Shown here in pieces: positions 32,234-48,900 of a stretch of 64,000 nucleotides of DNA. Made by a program: the position numbers and the translations under genes. A model generated the notes under the pieces. That model ran no database searches. It saw nothing but the letters and a program-made list of their open reading frames with translations, and had not been told where the DNA came from. The DNA comes from Lepidodermella squamata (Eukaryota; Animalia; Gastrotricha), in NCBI GenBank assembly GCA_047495785.1, contig JBLDXI010000018.1, forward strand, positions 372,001 to 436,000, given 5' to 3'. Every line of letters starts with the position of its first letter. Within the stretch, counting starts at the first letter, position 1.

Positions 32234-32574
32234 TCATAGAGATGAAATCGGTCAAATCGAAACCGATGCGGTTGAGCTTCGTCATTTCTCATGCCAATTT
32301 TTAGAAAATTTTCGTAAATTCCTCGTATAAAGTTTCAGTAACGATGATTTTTCCGAATTCAGGATCATTTACATGAATTTTTCCTGAAGTTTGGAATAAT
32401 CGTAAATTTGAAAAAAAATTGGTTGAATTTTGGAAATTTTTAGAAAATTGGCTTCGAGAAATGCTAGTAGCTCGATTCTAGCTTTAATAATATTTTCTAG
32501 TCAACAGCCGTCGAATTTTCTGACAATTTCAAATTTTTTCTGTAGTAGGGTTTTAAGTCACGTGGTGTTGAATC

Positions 32575-35500
32575 ATGGGGCGCAGACCCTCGCCGACGTA
32601 TTCGGCCCTTCACTCGCTAGCAGATCGGAATACAGGCGCCACACCGGGCGAGTTGCTGCATTTCCGCGAGCAGCACGCCGTCACGCGGTCGACCATCAGC
32701 CGACTGGGGCTGTCTTCGGAACTCGACGGCCACGATGGCTGCGTCAATTGCCTGGAGTGGAACGAAACAGGCTCGCTGCTCGTGTCCGGGTCCGACGACT
32801 TGTGCCTCTGCGTTTGGCAGCCGTTCGGCAAGCGCAAGCTGCTGCGGCGGATCAAAACGCATCACAGTGGCAATATTTTCTCGGTCAAATTCGTGGCAGG
32901 GCACAGCGATAACCTACTCGCTTCCGGGGCGGCTGATTGCCGAGTTCAATTACATGACATCGAACAAGGTATTTTGCTTGAACTTTTGATTCTATGAAAA
33001 TATTGACAGAAAATGACGAAGAAATCTGCCTCTCTGTATCCACGGGGTATTTAAGGGGGGTTAGGGGCAAAGCGGAGTGTTTAAGGTCGATTTCGCTTTT
33101 TACATCTCCCAATATTCGGAATCGCACGGTAATTTACCCAGAATTCATGGGATTTTGGACTCTTGGTCTGCTATTCTATCGAAAAAAATTGAAAATTACC
33201 GCAGATTATTCGAGAAACCCAAAAATGACTGGATCGGTGATTTTTCGGTATTTTACCTATTTCGACCGAGTTCCTACGGATTATTGAAAGCTGCATATTT
33301 ACTTTAATTAGCTGACCTGATATATTCAAAGCTGCGCTGTGATTGATAAGAGGATGAAAAAATCTTTTGATAGGTTTTAATTATGTCGTTCCAGAATTTG
33401 ACCCACTTCATCTGATACTTGGCGCTGTCCAAAAATTGTGGTTGATTAAATCTAACCTCAAATCTAATATCCAATCATTTACAAATTTCTTAGCATTAAT
33501 TTAATTGTGTTCAAATTCATTATTCGTGATTCGAGTTTATTAAAAGTGCTCTTGGTTAATTTTAGGCACAACCCTTCGAACTTTCGCGAACAACGGCGGT
33601 CGCGTGAAGCGGCTCGCAACCACGCCGTCGGTCGCCGACGTGTTCTGGGTGGGCGCCGAGGACGGCACCGTCATGCAGTACGACCTGCGCGATCCGAGCG
33701 TGTCGGCCGGCGCCCGAAACCCACCCATCGTACTCCTGAATCTGAACGCCCACTGCGGACCGCACGTCGAGGTGAAATGCGTCGCGGTCAATCACCAACG
33801 GCCTGAACTGCTCGCTGTTGGCTGCAACGACCCGTACGTGCGCGTGTACGACCGGCGAAGTCTCACGACTCGGCCTTTGTCGATGCCGTCAATGGCGGTG
33901 GCGGCTGGTGGGGCGCCGCTGTCTGGCGTCGAGGAGGAGGAGGTCGCTAAGAAATGGGCGTCGCCTGCCGAGTGGTCCATACCCGACTGCGCGGCGACTT
34001 ACTACGCTGCTGGTGAGTGGTTTTTTCTGATTTTCCTATTACACTCGACCTTATGCTTGGAATGAATATTTTAGCAATTGGTTGAATTTTTGAGAATTTT
34101 AAATTGAAAATAGGATGTCTATCCTGAACATTTCTTTAACCCGGATAGTGAGATTCATTCCAAGCCTGGCGAGTGGTAGAAGTTGCACATAACACAACCA
34201 CAGCTGTGTTGCCTATCTCAATAACCAACCTGTTGTGGGAAACGTGTGCATATAATGAAGCCCAGAACCGAGGCTCGGTAATTCCAGCCTCCAGCTATAT
34301 CAAGATCCATTACAAAACGCGGCTGCTTTGAGTCTCGGTCTCACATTTTTGTCTCATTTTCAACCCATTCAGGTCATCTTCCAAGTAAAGAAGCAACTTA
34401 CCGCCGGCAATTTCGGCAACTGTCAGTCACTTATCTCACATTCAGCCCGGATGGCACCGAGCTGTTGGCGAACTGCGGGGGAGAACAAATTTACCTGTTC
34501 GACATTCGTGAACCTCGTCACGTCGAACGATTCCGGCCGCCGTCAGTTTCTCCAAGCATCGACTCACAAAATCGATTCCGCCTCGCGTCGGCGTCGAATT
34601 TCCACGACGTGGCGCATTTCGCTGAGCCGTTCAACGGCTCGGTCATGGCCTCGCCGAGATCGCTCGATCTCAACCGGTTGGCCGAGCTCATCAAAGAGCG
34701 GGCGAATATGTATTATTCAGAGAAGAAATTTCCACTATCAATCCAGGCGTATAACCAAGCGCTGGCCATCAACCCTCGATCGGCTGTTATTTGGGCCAAT
34801 CGAGCCGCGGCTTTGCTCAAACGCAACTGGTGCGGCGACACTTACCTGGTACGTTCATTTTGGAATTTTTTATAAGTTTCCAATTTAGGGTACAGAAATC
34901 CAATTTTTCACAAATTGGTTTTTTGATAATTGAATTGGGTTTTTGATAATTGAATTTCTTTGAATATTTCATCGATTTTCGGTCATTTTATTTGCATTTT
35001 TCGTTTGATTTCAGGCCGCACGTGACTGCCAACTGGCGATCGAAATCGACCCTGACTATTTCAAAGCCTACTGCCGTTTAGCGCGGTGTCTCTACGACCT
35101 CGACTGGGCGTCGGACGCGCTCAAAGTGCTCGATTACGTCAAATCAAAATTCTCAGACGATCAAATCGCTCAAATTGAGTCTTTCTACACTACAGTCGTA
35201 AGTTTTGGGATTTTATGTCAAAAATATGCCAATTTTATAAATTACATAGAAATCTGCCTCGGATCTGAACTTATCTGAGGATTCGTCGCCGTCGCGTCGC
35301 CGGACTCGCATGAGTTCATCGTCGACGCGGTCGAACGAATCCGACTCGGCTGATACGTCGGCGTCGGATGCGGGGCGAGATGCGCGGCCGTTTCGATCGA
35401 GGCGGCTCGACAACTTGTCTTCGACTGAAAAGCAATTCCGAAATGGGGCTTTCGACTACAGTGTCATGTTTTCCGGCCATTGTAACACTACGACGGATAT

Positions 35501-36677
35501 CAAGGAGGCGAATTTCTTCGGCACGAATTACATCGTCGCCGGTTCAGATGACGGCCACTTTTTCTGCTGGGAACGCAGCACGCAAAACGTCGTCAAAGTA
35601 CGTTTGTATAAACTTCTTTTATTCATTTCAGGGTAAGTTTTAGTCATAGTCTTGCAAGGAAGAAAGAGATTCCTCGAGATCAGTTGCGCTATTGTCCAGA
35701 TTTCAAGGATCAACTTCGTATGCATTCGTAGTGTTCGTATTCCTCAGATTTGTTAGCAGTCTCATTCAATTGAGCGAGTGCTCAAAATTGTAATAGCAAA
35801 CACTCCCGATATATTCATTAGATTGTAAGATGGATAAAAAATGGGATTAAATGCAAGAAATTTCGGTTCCATTAACTAGCAACGTGAGAAGCCAATTTTG
35901 GTCATATATCTTCAGTTGCTTGTAGCTGGTTATAAGGTCGAATGATAACGTCGTCGCCACAGAGTTGGTCGAAATACGAACTTTGAGCGACAATCGATAC
36001 GAAGGTAGGACGGACGCATTGAACTCTCAGATTAGCCGGAGTAAGGAAAAACGGATGGCTATTATAAGTTGTAATTTGAAACTGATTCATTCATCAACTG
36101 AGAGTAATAGTGGATCAATTTAGCTTGAAACCTCCTAAGTATGAATGAGTAATGAAAATAACAAGAAAATGAATAATTATGACATAGGTATGGCATGGGT
36201 ATTATAGTCGCTTCACCTAAAAAATGATAATTCTTACTCATAACTTTTGCTTAGATTTTGAATGGCGACGATTCGATCGTGAATTGCCTGCAGCCGGCGC
36301 CGAACTCGTGTCTGCTGGCGACGAGCGGCATCGACAAGGTGGTGCGGCTGTGGTCGCCGCTGGCGGAGGACGGCCGGCCGAACCCGCGTCTCGTCTCGGC
36401 CGCGTGGAACAAGGTGGCGGAGGAGAACCAGCGGCGCATGAACGCCGACCCGCTCGAGGTCATGCTGCAGTCGATGGGCTACCGCATCGTGTCAACCGAG
36501 GACGAGAACGAAAATAGCAATAACAATGATGGCCACAATGACAATTCAGACGGAGATTCCGATGACGGGGATAATAACGATGGCGATGGGGATGACCCGA
36601 GGAGGCGGCCTAGGGGAGGCGGCGGCGGCGGCAGCAGTCGACCTGGCCCGGGTCGAGTCGCTTGTGCTCAGAGTTGA
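32575..36677 (+). CDS. WDTC1: WD and tetratricopeptide repeats protein 1 (adipose/DCAF9). Exons 32575-32968, 33566-34012, 34373-34848, 35015-35197, 35250-35597, 36255-36677
   Basis: LDGHDGCVNCLEWN, HSGNIFSVKF, TPR NRAAALLKRNWCGD, GHCNTTTDIKEANFFG, NQRRMNADPLEVML. Confidence 0.95.
34182..34348 (+). ncRNA. Intronic H/ACA-like RNA, copy 1 (WDTC1 intron 2)
   Basis: Hairpin, ANANNA (ATATAA 34250-34255), hairpin, ACA (34343-34345); 165/166 nt identical to 37627-37792. Confidence 0.65.
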
Positions 36678-36974
36678 GTCAACGATGAATGAACAATCTG
36701 CTCAGATTCTCAACAAGTCAACTAAAACTTGTGTCCATATTGACCTATATTATAAAGATTATCATGTTACTTTTGGTGATTGAACACTTGTTAGAAGCAA
36801 GAAAAAATATATTTACTACCAAGTAATAACACGGCTTGATGTATAACCATATATATATTATAATGGGTTCTTTTTTATAAAATTTTCCAGCGATTGTTGC
36901 TATTATTTGATTGCATTTTTTTTAAATGCTCTAGTATTTATTGAATGAGTTGTTGTCGATTGGCGTGCTGAGAT

Positions 36975-39900
36975 ATGCGGCTGAAGTTGATTCAGCTTGG
37001 CCTGTTAGTGTGGAAGTGCTGGAAGACCGAGTCGCGCAATCGAATTCGACTCATCGCGCAGATAGTATGGCCCCTGTTCATGTTCCTCATCCTACTGATC
37101 GTCCGCAAAACGCGAAGTCTTCGATTCCCCATGGACGAATGTGAGTCGCTGCTGAAAAGAAAACGCGAATTTGAATGAACCAAATTTTGATATCATAGGC
37201 CATTTTGATGCGAGACCCCTACCCTCGGCGGGCATTCTGCCCTTTGCTCAGGGCTTCGTGTGTGCCTTCAACAACACGTGCTACAACTATTCGACTCTGA
37301 GTGAAAATTCAACATATCCATTCCGCCAAGTGCCGTAAGTTGCCTAGATTTTGTTTTCGAAAATCGCCAACCAGGTCAAATTCGCTGACATTGCCTAAAA
37401 TCCTCAGAACAGAACATACTTCATTTTTGCCAAAAATGTCATATTTTTTAATCATTATTGAAATATTGAACCAAATGTTGAAATTGTTATGAAATTGGGT
37501 TTCTTGAAGTTCTAAACTCATTTCAAGGCAATTTTCAATTTGGCTTTCCAAATCGTTATATGGTGATTACCCCGAGATTTCAAATCGGTTTTCGTAGGCA
37601 ATGTCGTCTTAATTTGACTTGACTAGGTTGCACATAACACAACCACAGCTGTGTTGCCTATCTCAATAACCAACCTGTTGTGGGAAACGTGTGCATATAA
37701 TGAAGCCCAGAACCGAGGCTCGGTAATTCCAGCCTCCAGCTATATCAAGATCCATTACAAAACGCGGCAGCTTTGAGTCTCGGTCTCACATTGTTTTTCC
37801 GTATAATTTCTAGTTTGGTCGGGTTGCTAAAAGAAACTGGCGACGTGCTGCGGCTGGCTAATGACACCGGTCTGTTCGAAACGCTGACGAACGACGCCAA
37901 GGTTATGCAAGACTTCCTGGTGATACTTCTCAACGACTCGGCCGTTTCGCACATGAACTTTTCGGATTTGTACGACCCGGCGCGCATGGACGAAATGGAA
38001 CTCGAGCTGCTGAATGCCGGGCTGTCGCAGCAGGCCGTCAACACGCTGCTCGACGCGAAAATCAACGGCCCTGGGCTGGCCGGGGTGATCACGGCTCGCG
38101 GCCAGAAATCGGCTGAAAAAGACTCGGAAGCGCTGGACCGGTTGTTCGAAATCGCGCAGGGCAACGACGAGTTGACACGTGACGAAGTGTGCGACACGGA
38201 CATTATCACGCTGTTTCTGCGCCGATCCGAAGACCCTTTGGACGGCTCGCTCGACTACTTGCAGCAGGAGTTGTGCAACCTGGAGCCCGATCAGCTGCAA
38301 GAGGTCGGCGATGTGCTGCGGCGCCACTTGTCCCTTCGCGATTTCGTGCCCAAATTGCGCAGGTTTGTTATCACCTTAATTATAAAATGTTCAATTCATG
38401 TCTAATTTTCGGTTTTAGTTACATATCGTTCGAGACTGGCCTGGAGCTGTTGACGGAAGCGAGTCAACTGCGGTCGTTTTTCCGCGGCTCGAATGACATA
38501 TTCTCGAGTGGGTCGACGATCGCGTTTTTGAACGACCTGCAGCAAACAATCAATTTGACGGAGACGAACCTTGACCCGACGAGTCCGTTGGCGCAAATCG
38601 CGCCCTTTTGGTACCCGCTGTGCAACCGCCCGTTCCCCGTCACCGAAATGTCGGACGCGTTCAAGAGCTACACGCGCAACACGGACATCGACTCGTCGTT
38701 TGACGTGCGAGCCGACAACACGACCGGCAAGAACGAGACGGTCATTTGCAAGGAGATGCGCCGAAATGAGTCCTACGACAACTCGTTGTCGTGTTCTTGC
38801 AACGCTTTTCTGGTAAGCTCAAATTTCAGATTCTTTGTCTAAGAAAATTCATTTGAATAGCCGTTTTTCGATATTTTTACTGAGTAATTAATTGAAGTTT
38901 TCAAATTTATTATTGAATTTGAAGCCGGATTCAAAAACGGGTACGATTCGGAAAGCTAGTGAACCAATTTTTTCGGTTTTCCGATCGATTCCCTATTTTT
39001 AATATTTGCTCTGGTAAGGACAGCAGCAAATCACAAATCAATCAATCGTTTTCTCCTATCGAACTTGGAGCCATTTTTCTGAAGTAGTAGATTTATAAGA
39101 CTCGGTGGCATTTTAGAAGATGGGGTTTTGAACCAATGAAGGATTTTGCTTGAACTAACAAAGCTAAATTGCTAAATGACTTTTAATTCGGAAATTTACA
39201 GTTGTGTCAAATGTGTCAATTTTTTGCAGTTGCCGTTCCAAAAAGCGAACTTCCTGTGGCGGATCGTGAAGCCGCTGCTGCGCGGCAAGGTGCTGTACTA
39301 CCCGAACACGCCGCTGACGCACCGCATCATCCGCGACGTGCGCACCCGCGTCGACCTGGCCGGACAACTGGCGTCCAGCATATCGCTCGTCATCGAGTTT
39401 GGCCGGTTCGTGCGCGAGACCTACGCCGACAACTTCCGCGCGCTCGCCAAGCTCGAGTCGGTGTACATGCTGATCGACGAGCTGGCGGAGGCGGACCTCA
39501 ACGACACGGCCGAGCTGCTGCCGCCGAATCTGCGCGACGGCGTCGTCGTCGGCCAGAAAAACGCGACTCGCGTGCTGCGCCGCGCCGTCGAGATGTTCGA
39601 CGCCTTCGACTGGCAGAAACTGTTCGACGTCACGCTGCCGCGCCTCAAAAGCCGCGTCGACTGCTTCGTGCGCCCGGATCGCTTCCAGCCGGTCTCCAGC
39701 GTCGACGAACTCGTCACCAAGGGCATGAATCTAACCCTCGAAGATGACCTCTGGGCTGCCATCCAGTTCTACGACGCCGAGTCGCTGAACAACACGAACG
39801 GCTCGAATGGCTCGTTCGTGGTGCCGCCGCTGATAAAATACGCCATTCGCATGGACCCGGACCTGGTCGATCAGACGGACGTGTTCAAGGACAGGCCGAG

Positions 39901-45900: not shown

Positions 45901-48900
45901 AGAACATCGGACGACTTGCTGAATCTGACGAGTCTCAACGTGTCGCAGTACATTTTGAACGAGTTCTATCTGTTCCGACACAACTTTTTCGGCGGGTTGA
46001 CGTTTGTCGTGCAGCAGTTTGCGTTGAATCGATCTGAAGCCGAGGCGTTCTACGGCGTCCTCTACGACCTGTCCCTATCGACGCGTGATACGTTGAATCG
46101 GACGTTCGGCAACAACACGCGGCCGTTTGATGGCATCAAATTCCGAAATATCTCCGGAATCGTCAACAATCTGCAGAACCGGACGAATCGACTCGTCAAT
46201 GATACTGCGGAACGGTTGCGTAATTTCACGCTGCCAGCTGCGCTGCGAAACGTCTCGTTGCCATTCACACTGCCGGCTAATTTGCGAAATGTGACTCTGC
46301 CGTTCAATTTGCCTCAGTTGAGGACAACAACGCTGGCTAGGCCGAAACGACAGGCGGTGGTGATATCAACGCGGCGGCCTATGGTGATTTCGTTGAGAAA
46401 CGCGACTCTGCTGCCAGCTAGGCTGCGGAATATCACGGCGCCGAATGTCAACGTGACTCGTATCGTCAATGGGGCGAATGCCACGGTGGATAAACTGCGG
46501 CGAAATTCGAATATCACGAGCGCAGTTCGAGACATTGCGGAACGGCTGCGGAATTTGACGACGTTTGGCAACCGAACTCGCACGCCGATTTGGGCGAATT
46601 TGACGGCGAATTCGAGCCTCGAGACCGCGGCGCTGATGGAGCTGTTGACGACGGGCCTGTTCGCCCCGGCCTCCGTCCAGGTGTGGTTCAACAACAAGGG
46701 CTGGCCGTCGAGCGTGGCGTACAACAACTACGCGAACAACATGCTGCTGCGACTGGCGGTGTCGCGCGACGTCAACCAGCCCGACAGCCGGTACGGCATT
46801 GTGGCGGTCAACCACCCGTTGAATTACACCAAGGAGGAGTTCGCCCAGCAGCTGCAACGCGCCGTTTTCGTCGACGTTCTCATGGCCATTATGCTTGTAG
46901 GTTCATCTTTCATATTCCTGAACTTGGAATTTGGATTAAAAAAAGAATAACCAAATTGACTTTTAGCTTGGGTATTTTCGCGTAAACCCAGTTGTAACTG
47001 AGATTTGAATCGCATTGGAATTGAATAATTCAAATTGTTATAATGTATGCCATGTAAATTGCCTGCTTTTTGTAGATTTTGGCAATGTCATTCGTGCCGG
47101 CTAGCTTTGTGATTTTCCTGATCGAAGACCGGCAGTCGGACTCGAAGCACGTGCAAATCGTGAGCGGGCTGAAGCCGTTCGTGTACTGGCTGGCGAACTA
47201 CACGTGGGACTGCGTCAACTACGCCATCCCGTGCCTCATCTGCCTCGCCATCTTCGCCATTTTCAACATCGAGGCGTACATCAGCGAGAAGTCGGCCAGC
47301 GCCCTGCTGCTCCTCCTTCTGCTCTACGGCTTCGCAGTCACGCCGATGCTGTACCCGACCTCGCTGTTCCTGTCCACGCCGTCGACCGCCTTCGTCATCC
47401 TGGCGTGCGCGAACCTGATCATCGGCTCGGCGACCACCATCGCCACGTACATGCTCGACCTGCTGCAGATGAACGACGAGACGCTGCGCCCGGTCAACGA
47501 CATCCTCAAGGTGCTCTTCTTCATCTTCCCGCAGTACTGCCTCGGCCGCGGCCTCCTCAACATGGCCATGTCGTACCGACGCGCCCAGTCGATCGCCTTC
47601 CTACTCGGCACCGGCATCGGCAGCCACGACCCGTCCCGCTGGGACGTCTGCGGCCAGTTCTACTTCGCCCTGTTACTCCACGCCGCCGGGTGGCTGCTCG
47701 TGAATCTCCTGATCGAATACGGCTCCATGCTGTGGGCGCGGCTCAAGCAGGCGCTCGGTGCTAAACGGTCGATTTCGCTGCCCGGTGCTACGTACGAGCC
47801 GGCGAACGACGCGCACATTGCCGAGGACGATGACGTGGCGAAGGAGCGGCTGGCGGTCAAGAACAGCCCCGCCCAGTTCACCATGGTTGTGCGCGATTTG
47901 ACGAAGCGTTTCTCGACGAGTCGTGGCAAGCTCACGGCCGTTGATCAACTCAGCTTCGGCGTACCCTCCGGCCAGTGTTTCGGCCTGTTGGGCGTCAATG
48001 GCGCCGGCAAAACTACGACCTTCCGCATGCTGACCGGGCACATTCCGCCGAGTGGCGGCGCGGCGACTATCAACGGCTTCGACACAGCTTCTCAGGTGAG
48101 TAAAACGCAAAACATTTGAAACAATCGTTATTCTTCGACAACTTCGAGGCAGTTGTCATACATGAGAGCGAATCATCCCTTGAATTTCTTAAATTCGTAT
48201 ATAATTTTGAAAATGATTGAAATTTAACAACTTTTTGTGAATAATTTCGTTCATCTTAATTTGTAGCGAACTGAGGCGAACAAGCTGATCGGGTACTGCC
48301 CACAGGCGGACTGCATCACGCCGCTGCTGTCGGGCCGCGAGAACCTCGAGTTCTTCGCGCGGCTGCGCGGCGTGCCCGAGTCGCTGGTGCGGCAGGTCGC
48401 CGAGTTCAACATCCGGCGCATGGACCTGCGCCGCCACGCCGACAAGCCGGCGCGCCACTACTCGGGCGGCAACAAGCGCAAGCTGTCCGTCGCCATTTCG
48501 ATGACGGGCGAGCCGCCGCTCGTCTTCCTCGACGAACCCACGGCCGGCATCGACCCGCGCGCTCGCCGGTTCCTGTGGCGCGCCATCTCGCAGCTGCTGC
48601 TCAACGGCCAGTCGGTCGTGCTGACGACGCACTCGATGGACGAGTGCGAGGCCCTGTGCACCCGACTCGCCATCATGGTCAGTTTTTTCTCTCACGATCT
48701 CATGGGATTTCGGGTTGTCACTACACGATCAGATCGGCCTTGTATTCGTCTCTAGAAATAATTTGACAAGCGTAAAATTGCTTCGTAGTTCCTAATGTTT
48801 GCCTTCATTTGATTTGATGCGAAAATAGGAACGAGTCATGTCAATTTTAGTTTGAACAGCTGATAAGTGGAAAAATGAACAGTTTCAATCTTTTTGAAAA

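Follow-up and report, generated by a model that had tools for sequence, protein, structure and literature searches.

We identified a 166-nt unit that occurs almost unchanged in introns of two adjacent genes of the gastrotrich Lepidodermella squamata and that, judged from its sequence and predicted fold, is probably (at a probability of roughly 0.7) an orphan intronic snoRNA gene of the box H/ACA class, with either one copy having arisen from the other or gene conversion having kept both alike. The unit was found in a 64,000-nt stretch of contig JBLDXI010000018.1 (the window), in which copy A lies in a gene encoding WD40 and TPR domains (WDTC1-like) and copy B in an ABCA-type transporter gene (Table 1). 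The two copies are direct repeats on the same strand, 3.4 kb apart, and each is in the sense orientation relative to its host gene. In an ungapped alignment, 165 of the 166 positions are identical, the sole mismatch being a T at 34324 in copy A versus an A at 37769 in copy B (RNA position 143). At the 5' limit of identity, the base preceding 34182/37627 already differs; at the 3' limit, both copies read ACATT and then diverge, with T versus G as the third base after ACA. No collinear similarity was detected between the flanks (60 to 300 nt compared), and the one comparison scoring above shuffles reflected a gapped AT-rich stretch at unequal distances from the element. The duplicated unit opens 2 nt ahead of a 5' hairpin, takes in the ANANNA hinge and the 3' hairpin that follow, and closes 2 nt beyond ACA; it matches the predicted mature RNA. 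These results bear out a sequence-only reading of the window, which had described the near identity between unrelated flanks, its halt just past ACA, and, in agreement with the intron coordinates, the sense orientation of both copies and the short interval between ACA and the acceptor.

Table 1. Features of the two copies of the 166-nt unit (positions in the window)
Feature	Position	Strand	Remarks
Copy A, 166-nt H/ACA-like RNA	34182..34347	+	In 360-nt intron (34013-34372) of WDTC1-like gene
5' hairpin, copy A	34184..34250	+	MFE -22.4 kcal/mol, z = -2.7
H box candidate ATATAA (ANANNA)	34250..34255 (copy A), 37695-37700 (copy B)	+	Shares 1 nt with last pair of 5' hairpin
3' hairpin, copy A	34265..34342	+	MFE -23.7 kcal/mol, z = -2.8
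Sense match to 18S rRNA of this genome	34276..34293	+	13/13 to 18S 571-583; 17/18 when extended to 587 (one C inserted)
Antisense match, 10 nt	34318..34327	+	Sequence match to 18S 563-572 (530-loop region)
ACA box, copy A	34343..34345	+	27 nt ahead of acceptor G at 34372
Copy B, 165/166 identical	37627..37792	+	In 479-nt intron (37335-37813) of ABCA-type gene
ACA box, copy B	37788..37790	+	23 nt ahead of acceptor G at 37813

The predicted fold has the layout of a box H/ACA RNA. Minimum free energy (MFE) and centroid predictions, made for the full RNA and for each half, agree and give two hairpins, a single-stranded hinge, and a short tail. The stems named in the sequence-only reading (i.e., TGCACAT/GTGTGCA, CCACAGC/GTTGTGG, and ACCGAGGCTCGG/TTGAGTCTCGGT) were located in both copies, together with the ANANNA box and the ACA. 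The 5' hairpin consists of a lower stem of 7 bp, an internal loop (AACACAA/GAAAC), and an upper stem of 7 bp with an apical extension. The 3' hairpin has a basal stem of 12 to 14 bp with three G-U pairs in its upper half, followed by a small internal loop, a 5-bp CAGCC/GGCTG stem, and a 31-nt A/U-rich loop with little structure; the substitution in copy B disrupts one pair of the 5-bp stem. The ACA sits 3 nt past this hairpin. Compared with shuffled sequences, the fold was favored on the sense strand only (z = -2.7; antisense, z = -0.47). A layout test required both hairpins to measure 45 nt or more, the hinge to contain ANANNA, and the ACA to lie 0 to 4 nt past the last pair. Of the 1781 ACA-anchored 166-nt windows examined across the two strands, 4 passed, two of which were copies A and B. 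The other two were weak, and the one at 48695+ was rejected as a second candidate, its fold (z = -0.05) being no better than shuffles. The H/ACA-like architecture that had been claimed is thus real and rare against the local background.

Box H/ACA intronic snoRNAs share with the unit the hairpin-hinge(ANANNA)-hairpin-ACA order, a length of about 130 to 170 nt, a sense location in an intron of a protein-coding gene, and the match between the unit and the predicted mature RNA. The unit differs from them in its long basal stem, its large unstructured loop, its pocket-to-box spacings, and its lack of a guide-target fit and of an Rfam family. The Rfam comparison proposed in the sequence-only reading was run with gathering thresholds on the whole window and at E <= 10 on positions 33900 to 38100; nothing relevant was returned, and no family matched the 166-nt RNA even at the relaxed threshold. 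No relatives were recovered outside this genome among metagenome contigs, where a pattern of both 18S-related motifs (described below) spaced by 15 to 45 nt gave 29 matches, all GC-rich and bacterial, none of which fitted our covariance model R1. The closest relative of the WDTC1 exon was P0001 (62% identity).

Several more specific assignments were considered. The orphan H/ACA RNA U17/snR30 (SNORA73) base-pairs with 18S rRNA via the internal loop in its 3' hairpin (PMC2664660), and the present RNA resembles it in being of the orphan H/ACA type with short 18S-related sequences in the 3' hairpin. Identity with U17 was ruled out: the m1 (AUAUUCCUA-like) and m2 (AAACCAU) motifs are absent, and there was no Rfam SNORA73 match. 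The genome has its own U17-like RNA at G000:C21:2178646-2178839, which carries ATATTCCAT and AAACCAT ahead of its ACA. An assignment to scaRNAs was rejected, as neither apical loop contains UGAG (the CAB box), the sole UGAG lies in the basal stem, and no snRNA target was found. A box C/D snoRNA was also rejected, since direct reading of either strand gave no RUGAUGA/CUGA box pair and Rfam gave no match.

The pockets of the two hairpins depart from those of standard guides. The top of the pocket usually lies about 14 to 16 nt from the H or ACA box, with about 13 to 15 nt between the upper stem and the box; this feature defines guides and not all box H/ACA RNAs. In the MFE folds, the distance from the upper stem is 11 nt to the H box and 17 nt to the ACA, each about 2 nt off. 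Scans with several alternative pocket definitions found no canonical pseudouridylation target scoring above shuffled guides or targets in 18S, 5.8S, 28S, and 5S rRNAs, in U1, U2, U4, U5, and U6, or in the rDNA spacer. Whole-RNA duplex predictions against rRNA and the ITS were equaled by shuffles. Because of the missing canonical target and the off-spacing of both pockets, the putative RNA counts as an orphan H/ACA RNA. The sequence-only reading had cautioned that the 3' hairpin may not be a standard guide, and this caution proved apt for both pockets. As neither pocket fits a canonical site in the tested RNAs, a non-guide or non-canonical role appears more likely.

By analogy with known box H/ACA RNAs, the transcript would bind dyskerin/Cbf5, Nop10, Nhp2, and Gar1 during synthesis of the host pre-mRNA; splicing and debranching would then free it, and exonucleases would trim it back to the protected hairpin-H-hairpin-ACA core. 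One copy would have given rise to the other in the neighboring gene, through either of two routes: (i) a mature-sized unit may have been copied (trans-duplication), or (ii) two older copies may have been kept alike by gene conversion confined to the selected unit. Transfer of snoRNA copies to new hosts has been described before (PMC2653536; PMC1687206), and the case here shares with trans-duplication and mammalian snoRNA retroposons (snoRTs) a mature-sized, sense-oriented copy inside an intron of another host gene. In contrast to those, whose hallmarks are an A-rich tail and a target-site duplication (PMC1687206), neither copy is flanked by either feature, and the sites lie close together. A type-1 snoRT was rejected on these grounds, the flanks showing only chance repeats of 5 to 6 nt and no A-rich tail. 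Given that just 3.4 kb separates the sites, retroposition and local gene conversion or repair are equally likely. Of the earlier proposal that a functional intronic RNA had moved as a precise unit, the precise unit and its correspondence to the predicted mature RNA hold, and the retroposition hallmarks are absent. If confirmed, the pair would enlarge by one orphan H/ACA RNA the snoRNA repertoire of gastrotrichs, which is almost undescribed, and would represent a very recent (0.6% divergence) copying of a snoRNA into a neighboring host without the hallmarks of mammalian retroposons, a case that could help to distinguish, in invertebrates, snoRNA duplications mediated by RNA from those mediated by DNA.

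Other readings of the unit appear less probable to differing degrees. It is unlikely that the unit is a non-functional patch, i.e., a 166-nt piece of intron copied by DNA repair or template switching whose H/ACA appearance is a coincidence. Such a patch would suit the short distance and shared strand of the copies, the off-canonical pocket geometry, and the want of a target, homolog, or Rfam match. However, the boundaries of the copied piece would both need to match, to within 2 nt, those of a layout found in about 0.1% of ACA-anchored windows; a strand-specific fold would also be needed; and both copies would have to fall in the sense orientation at a similarly short distance from the acceptor, as do the genome's recognized H/ACA RNAs. 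It is quite unlikely that the unit is another structured intronic RNA or a cis element, for example one close to the branch point that influences how the 3' splice site is used. Here, the CUCAC overlapping the ACA box, 30 and 26 nt ahead of the AG, agrees with the yUnAy branch consensus, both copies end 20 to 25 nt ahead of the acceptor, and inspection by eye revealed no other yUnAy between the element and the AG in copy B. Against this, copy A has a separate CUCAU downstream of the element, no other sign of a splicing role was seen, and two unrelated, independently recognized H/ACA RNAs of the same genome have the same orientation and position, with acceptor distances of 19 nt (U17-like) and 33 nt (SNORA13-like); the position therefore fits ordinary snoRNA processing in this genome. 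A SNORA63 model found no match in the genome.

Precise ends at two insertion sites with unrelated flanks might also be expected of a small non-autonomous mobile element or a fragment of a longer transposon. The copy-number check by BLAST that the sequence-only reading had suggested speaks against this: only two copies, both sense, were found in 121 Mb, whether the search used the whole unit, each half alone, or covariance model R1 (E <= 10), and the pattern of many randomly oriented copies expected of a transposon was not seen. With two genomic copies only, the unit is not a dispersed repeat, and a multicopy element was ruled out. Since the copies also lie in the same orientation 3.4 kb apart, lack terminal repeats, target-site duplications, and A-rich tails, and resemble each other over 166 nt only, a mobile origin of any kind is very unlikely. 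An artefact of assembly or amplification is extremely unlikely. The probable source assembly derives from multiple-displacement-amplified (MDA) DNA (PMC11660948), MDA yields chimeras, and one rDNA contig of the assembly contains a palindromic 18S junction. However, the intron and exon sequence on either side of each copy is intact and consistent with coding, the copies differ by one base and form direct rather than inverted repeats, and HiFi reads (mean, 13 kb; 83x) would cover both.

The 3' hairpin bears a twofold relation to helix 18 of 18S rRNA (the 530 loop, in the decoding center), combining the 13-nt sense match with the adjacent 10-nt antisense match listed in Table 1; such a combination was shown by 28 of 200,000 shuffles. 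An interaction with helix 18 is one possibility for the role of the RNA. In such an interaction, the antisense element would hold 18S 563-572, while the sense copy of 13 to 17 nt, corresponding to 18S 571-587, would replace the 3' strand of the helix. This chaperone role would be comparable to that of U17/snR30 on ES6, and would differ from it in the site and in the use of a strand mimic, one of the two elements being sense. That an orphan H/ACA RNA acts on helix 18 in small-subunit assembly is, as a specific proposal, doubtful and decidedly improbable; this sense-plus-antisense relation is nevertheless the only part of the analysis that could lead to something new. The single difference between copies A and B falls within both the 10-nt antisense match and the 5-bp upper stem of the 3' hairpin.

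Two introns in the window hold copies of a 166-nt H/ACA-like unit (copies A and B; see the table), which are identical at 165 of 166 positions in an ungapped alignment, the sole mismatch (RNA position 143) being T in copy A (34324) but A in copy B (37769). Identity starts 2 nt before the first stem, the preceding base already belonging to unrelated sequence, and ends 2 nt past the ACA. Comparison of 60 to 300 nt of flank revealed no collinear similarity; the only flank score above those of shuffles came from a gapped AT-rich stretch at unequal distances from the two copies. The near identity and unrelated flanks described in the sequence-only reading are thereby borne out, and its account of the two copies was right in all details checked. 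BLAST searches of this 121-Mb animal genome (151 contigs) recovered exactly two copies of the whole unit, both sense to their hosts and with no longer repeat around them, and again two when each half was the query. A covariance model built on copies A and B matched only these two at E <= 10, and neither the half-unit searches nor this model found further relatives of either hairpin in the genome. With two copies genome-wide, the unit is therefore not a dispersed repeat.

Coordinates and structure of the duplicated unit, its host introns (donor to acceptor), and other features of the same genome (L, other loci; C, contigs of genome G000; bare numbers, positions in the window, G000:C18:372001-436000)
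Feature	Position	Details
Copy A	34182-34347 (+)	WDTC1-like host
Copy B	37627-37792 (+)	ABCA-type host
Intron A	34013-34372	360 nt
Intron B	37335-37813	479 nt
5' hairpin of unit		lower stem 7 bp; internal loop AACACAA/GAAAC; upper stem 7 bp
3' hairpin of unit		basal stem 12-14 bp, three G-U pairs in upper half; small internal loop; 5-bp stem; 31-nt A/U-rich loop
U17/SNORA73-like H/ACA RNA	L038:1501-1694 = G000:C21:2178646-2178839	Rfam 35 bits, below cut-off
SNORA13-like H/ACA RNA	L045:1501-1637 = G000:C24:4756113-4756249	Rfam 40 bits, below cut-off
Possible box C/D snoRNA	L058:40-120 = G000:C36:1259420-1259500	ATGAAGA, internal CTGA, GCTGGAATTAC directly 5' of CTGA
U3 snoRNA gene	L044:978-1216 (-)	104 bits; adjoins tRNA and U6 gene

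The host exons were searched singly, without joining into a spliced model. Those of host A encode WD40 and TPR domains; the exon 3' of the intron has 62% identity to a relative, and other matches are labelled WD and tetratricopeptide repeat protein 1 in their source records. Host B has one ABC2_membrane_3 and two ABC_tran domains (i.e., the ABCA layout). Donor and acceptor positions agree with the earlier claim that both copies are sense to their hosts, with the ACA 27 nt (copy A) and 23 nt (copy B) from the acceptor G. Noncoding stretches near the hosts share an AT-rich motif of 26 nt (AATTGGTTGAATTTTTGAGAATTTTA-like), located at 32417-32442, at 34076-34101 (inside intron A), and at four weaker sites; its best two copies are 88% alike, and it may be merely compositional.

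The sense strand of the unit folds into two hairpins (-46.1 kcal/mol; z = -2.7), each of which has z of about -2.7 when folded singly. The antisense fold is no better than shuffles (z = -0.47) because several of the pairs are G-U. ATATAA, which fits ANANNA, lies directly 3' of the 5' hairpin, and the basal stem of the 3' hairpin ends 3 nt from the ACA. The two strands of the 64 kb together contain 1781 ACA-anchored 166-nt windows, all of which were folded and screened for two hairpins (each 45 nt or longer), ANANNA in the hinge, and ACA 0 to 4 nt past the last pair; four passed, namely copies A and B and two weak ones. Window 48695-48860 (+), in an ABCA intron, was the only one beyond the two copies to pass at moderate energy; as an H/ACA RNA it is probably a false positive, its fold being no better than shuffles (z = -0.05). 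The hairpin-H-hairpin-ACA architecture noticed from the sequence is thus upheld by the sense-strand fold and by local rarity: the layout occurs in about 0.1% of ACA-anchored windows and matches the duplication limits within 2 nt at both ends. This coincidence is the main argument that the unit is an H/ACA-class RNA gene, and on the best reading copies A and B, a real and precisely duplicated pair, would be intronic genes of that class.

The genome carries other H/ACA-like RNAs. The U17/SNORA73-like RNA has the diagnostic motifs m1 (ATATTCCAT) and m2 (AAACCAT) and lies in an intron, 19 nt separating its ACA from the acceptor AG downstream; the distance is 33 nt for the SNORA13-like RNA. Copies A and B are sited as these are, an indication from two comparators and not a rule, so their placement agrees with the way such RNAs are carried in this animal. 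The possibility that the unit is itself U17 is ruled out, as the RNA bearing m1 and m2 sits at a separate locus. The snRNA genes are highly multicopy in this genome (>30-48 matches each for U1, U2, U5, and U6).

The suggested Infernal/Rfam check recovered no family for the unit, even at E <= 10. Neither terminal loop contains a CAB box, the unit has no C/D box pair, and one scan of metagenome contigs for relatives returned only bacterial chance matches. Bipartite targets were sought with several pocket definitions, including ones with the lowest upper-stem pairs or the G-U-rich top of the basal stem opened; none scored above shuffled guides or shuffled targets in the genome's own 18S, 5.8S, 28S, and 5S rRNAs, U1, U2, U4, U5, U6, or the rDNA spacer. 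The upper stems lie 11 nt from the H box and 17 nt from the ACA, whereas about 13 to 15 nt is usual. The spacings and the target scans favor the earlier suspicion that the unit is not a standard guide. By these tests, the unit would belong to the H/ACA class by shape without being a demonstrable pseudouridylation guide, and hence be an orphan.

Mammalian type-1 snoRNA retroposons have an A-rich tail and a target-site duplication (PMC1687206); copies A and B differ from them, as neither hallmark was found in their flanks. The proposal that a functional RNA moved as a precise unit therefore draws support from the precise limits and rare layout but not from retroposition marks. Trans-duplication, in which snoRNA copies are inserted into new host genes, is a described process (PMC2653536). 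Because 3.4 kb separates the copies, which share a strand, two routes remain: a mature-sized unit may have been copied recently, e.g., at a DNA break, without endonuclease marks, or an older duplication may have decayed in its flanks while gene conversion kept a selected 166 nt alike. Either route implies selection on the 166 nt as one unit.

A neutral repair patch with an accidental H/ACA look is unlikely, since its ends would need to hit the rare layout by chance, along with sense orientation and the usual acceptor distance. Slightly less probable is a cis-acting splicing element near the branch point: CUCAC, which overlaps the ACA box, matches the branch consensus and by eye is the sole sequence to do so within the final 30 nt of intron B, but nothing else supports this reading. 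That the unit is a small mobile element is very improbable given only two copies genome-wide. The probable source assembly was built from MDA DNA and HiFi reads (PMC11660948), and an assembly or amplification artefact is the most improbable explanation, as intact gene structure surrounds both copies, which differ at one base, are direct repeats, and fit together within one 13-kb read (PMC11660948).

As an H/ACA-class RNA, the unit would be an ordinary kind of feature, distinctive solely as an orphan whose 3' hairpin is noncanonical and whose relation to helix 18 of 18S rRNA is unexplained. RNA positions 95-107 match 18S 571-583 in sense at 13/13, extending to 587 at 17/18 with one C inserted, and positions 137-146 are antisense to 18S 563-572 (10/10). 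Taken singly, the antisense 10-mer is not unusual against shuffles, and the sense match was equalled in 1 of 300. A sense 13-mer and an antisense 10-mer within 15 nt of each other, for any rRNA, arose in 28 of 200,000 shuffles, a figure that flatters the case because the test was framed post hoc; chance is an unlikely source of the combination. The elements misfit a canonical pocket, given the 25 nt between the ACA and the start of the antisense element and a partner strand that is sense, and the copy B substitution (37769 A) falls within the antisense 10-mer. A helix-18 chaperone role is a guess. On a 52-kb rDNA contig, a partial 18S (minus; L006:1-1001) lies head-to-head with a full 18S (plus; L006:886-2702), overlapping by about 116 nt (G000:C130:44000-46701); a chimera from MDA or assembly may account for this palindrome. 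In the possible box C/D snoRNA, GCTGGAATTAC forms a guide of 11 nt for 18S 573-583, which would direct methylation of the first U of AAUU; this guide also has a complement within the H/ACA-like unit, in its sense copy of 18S.
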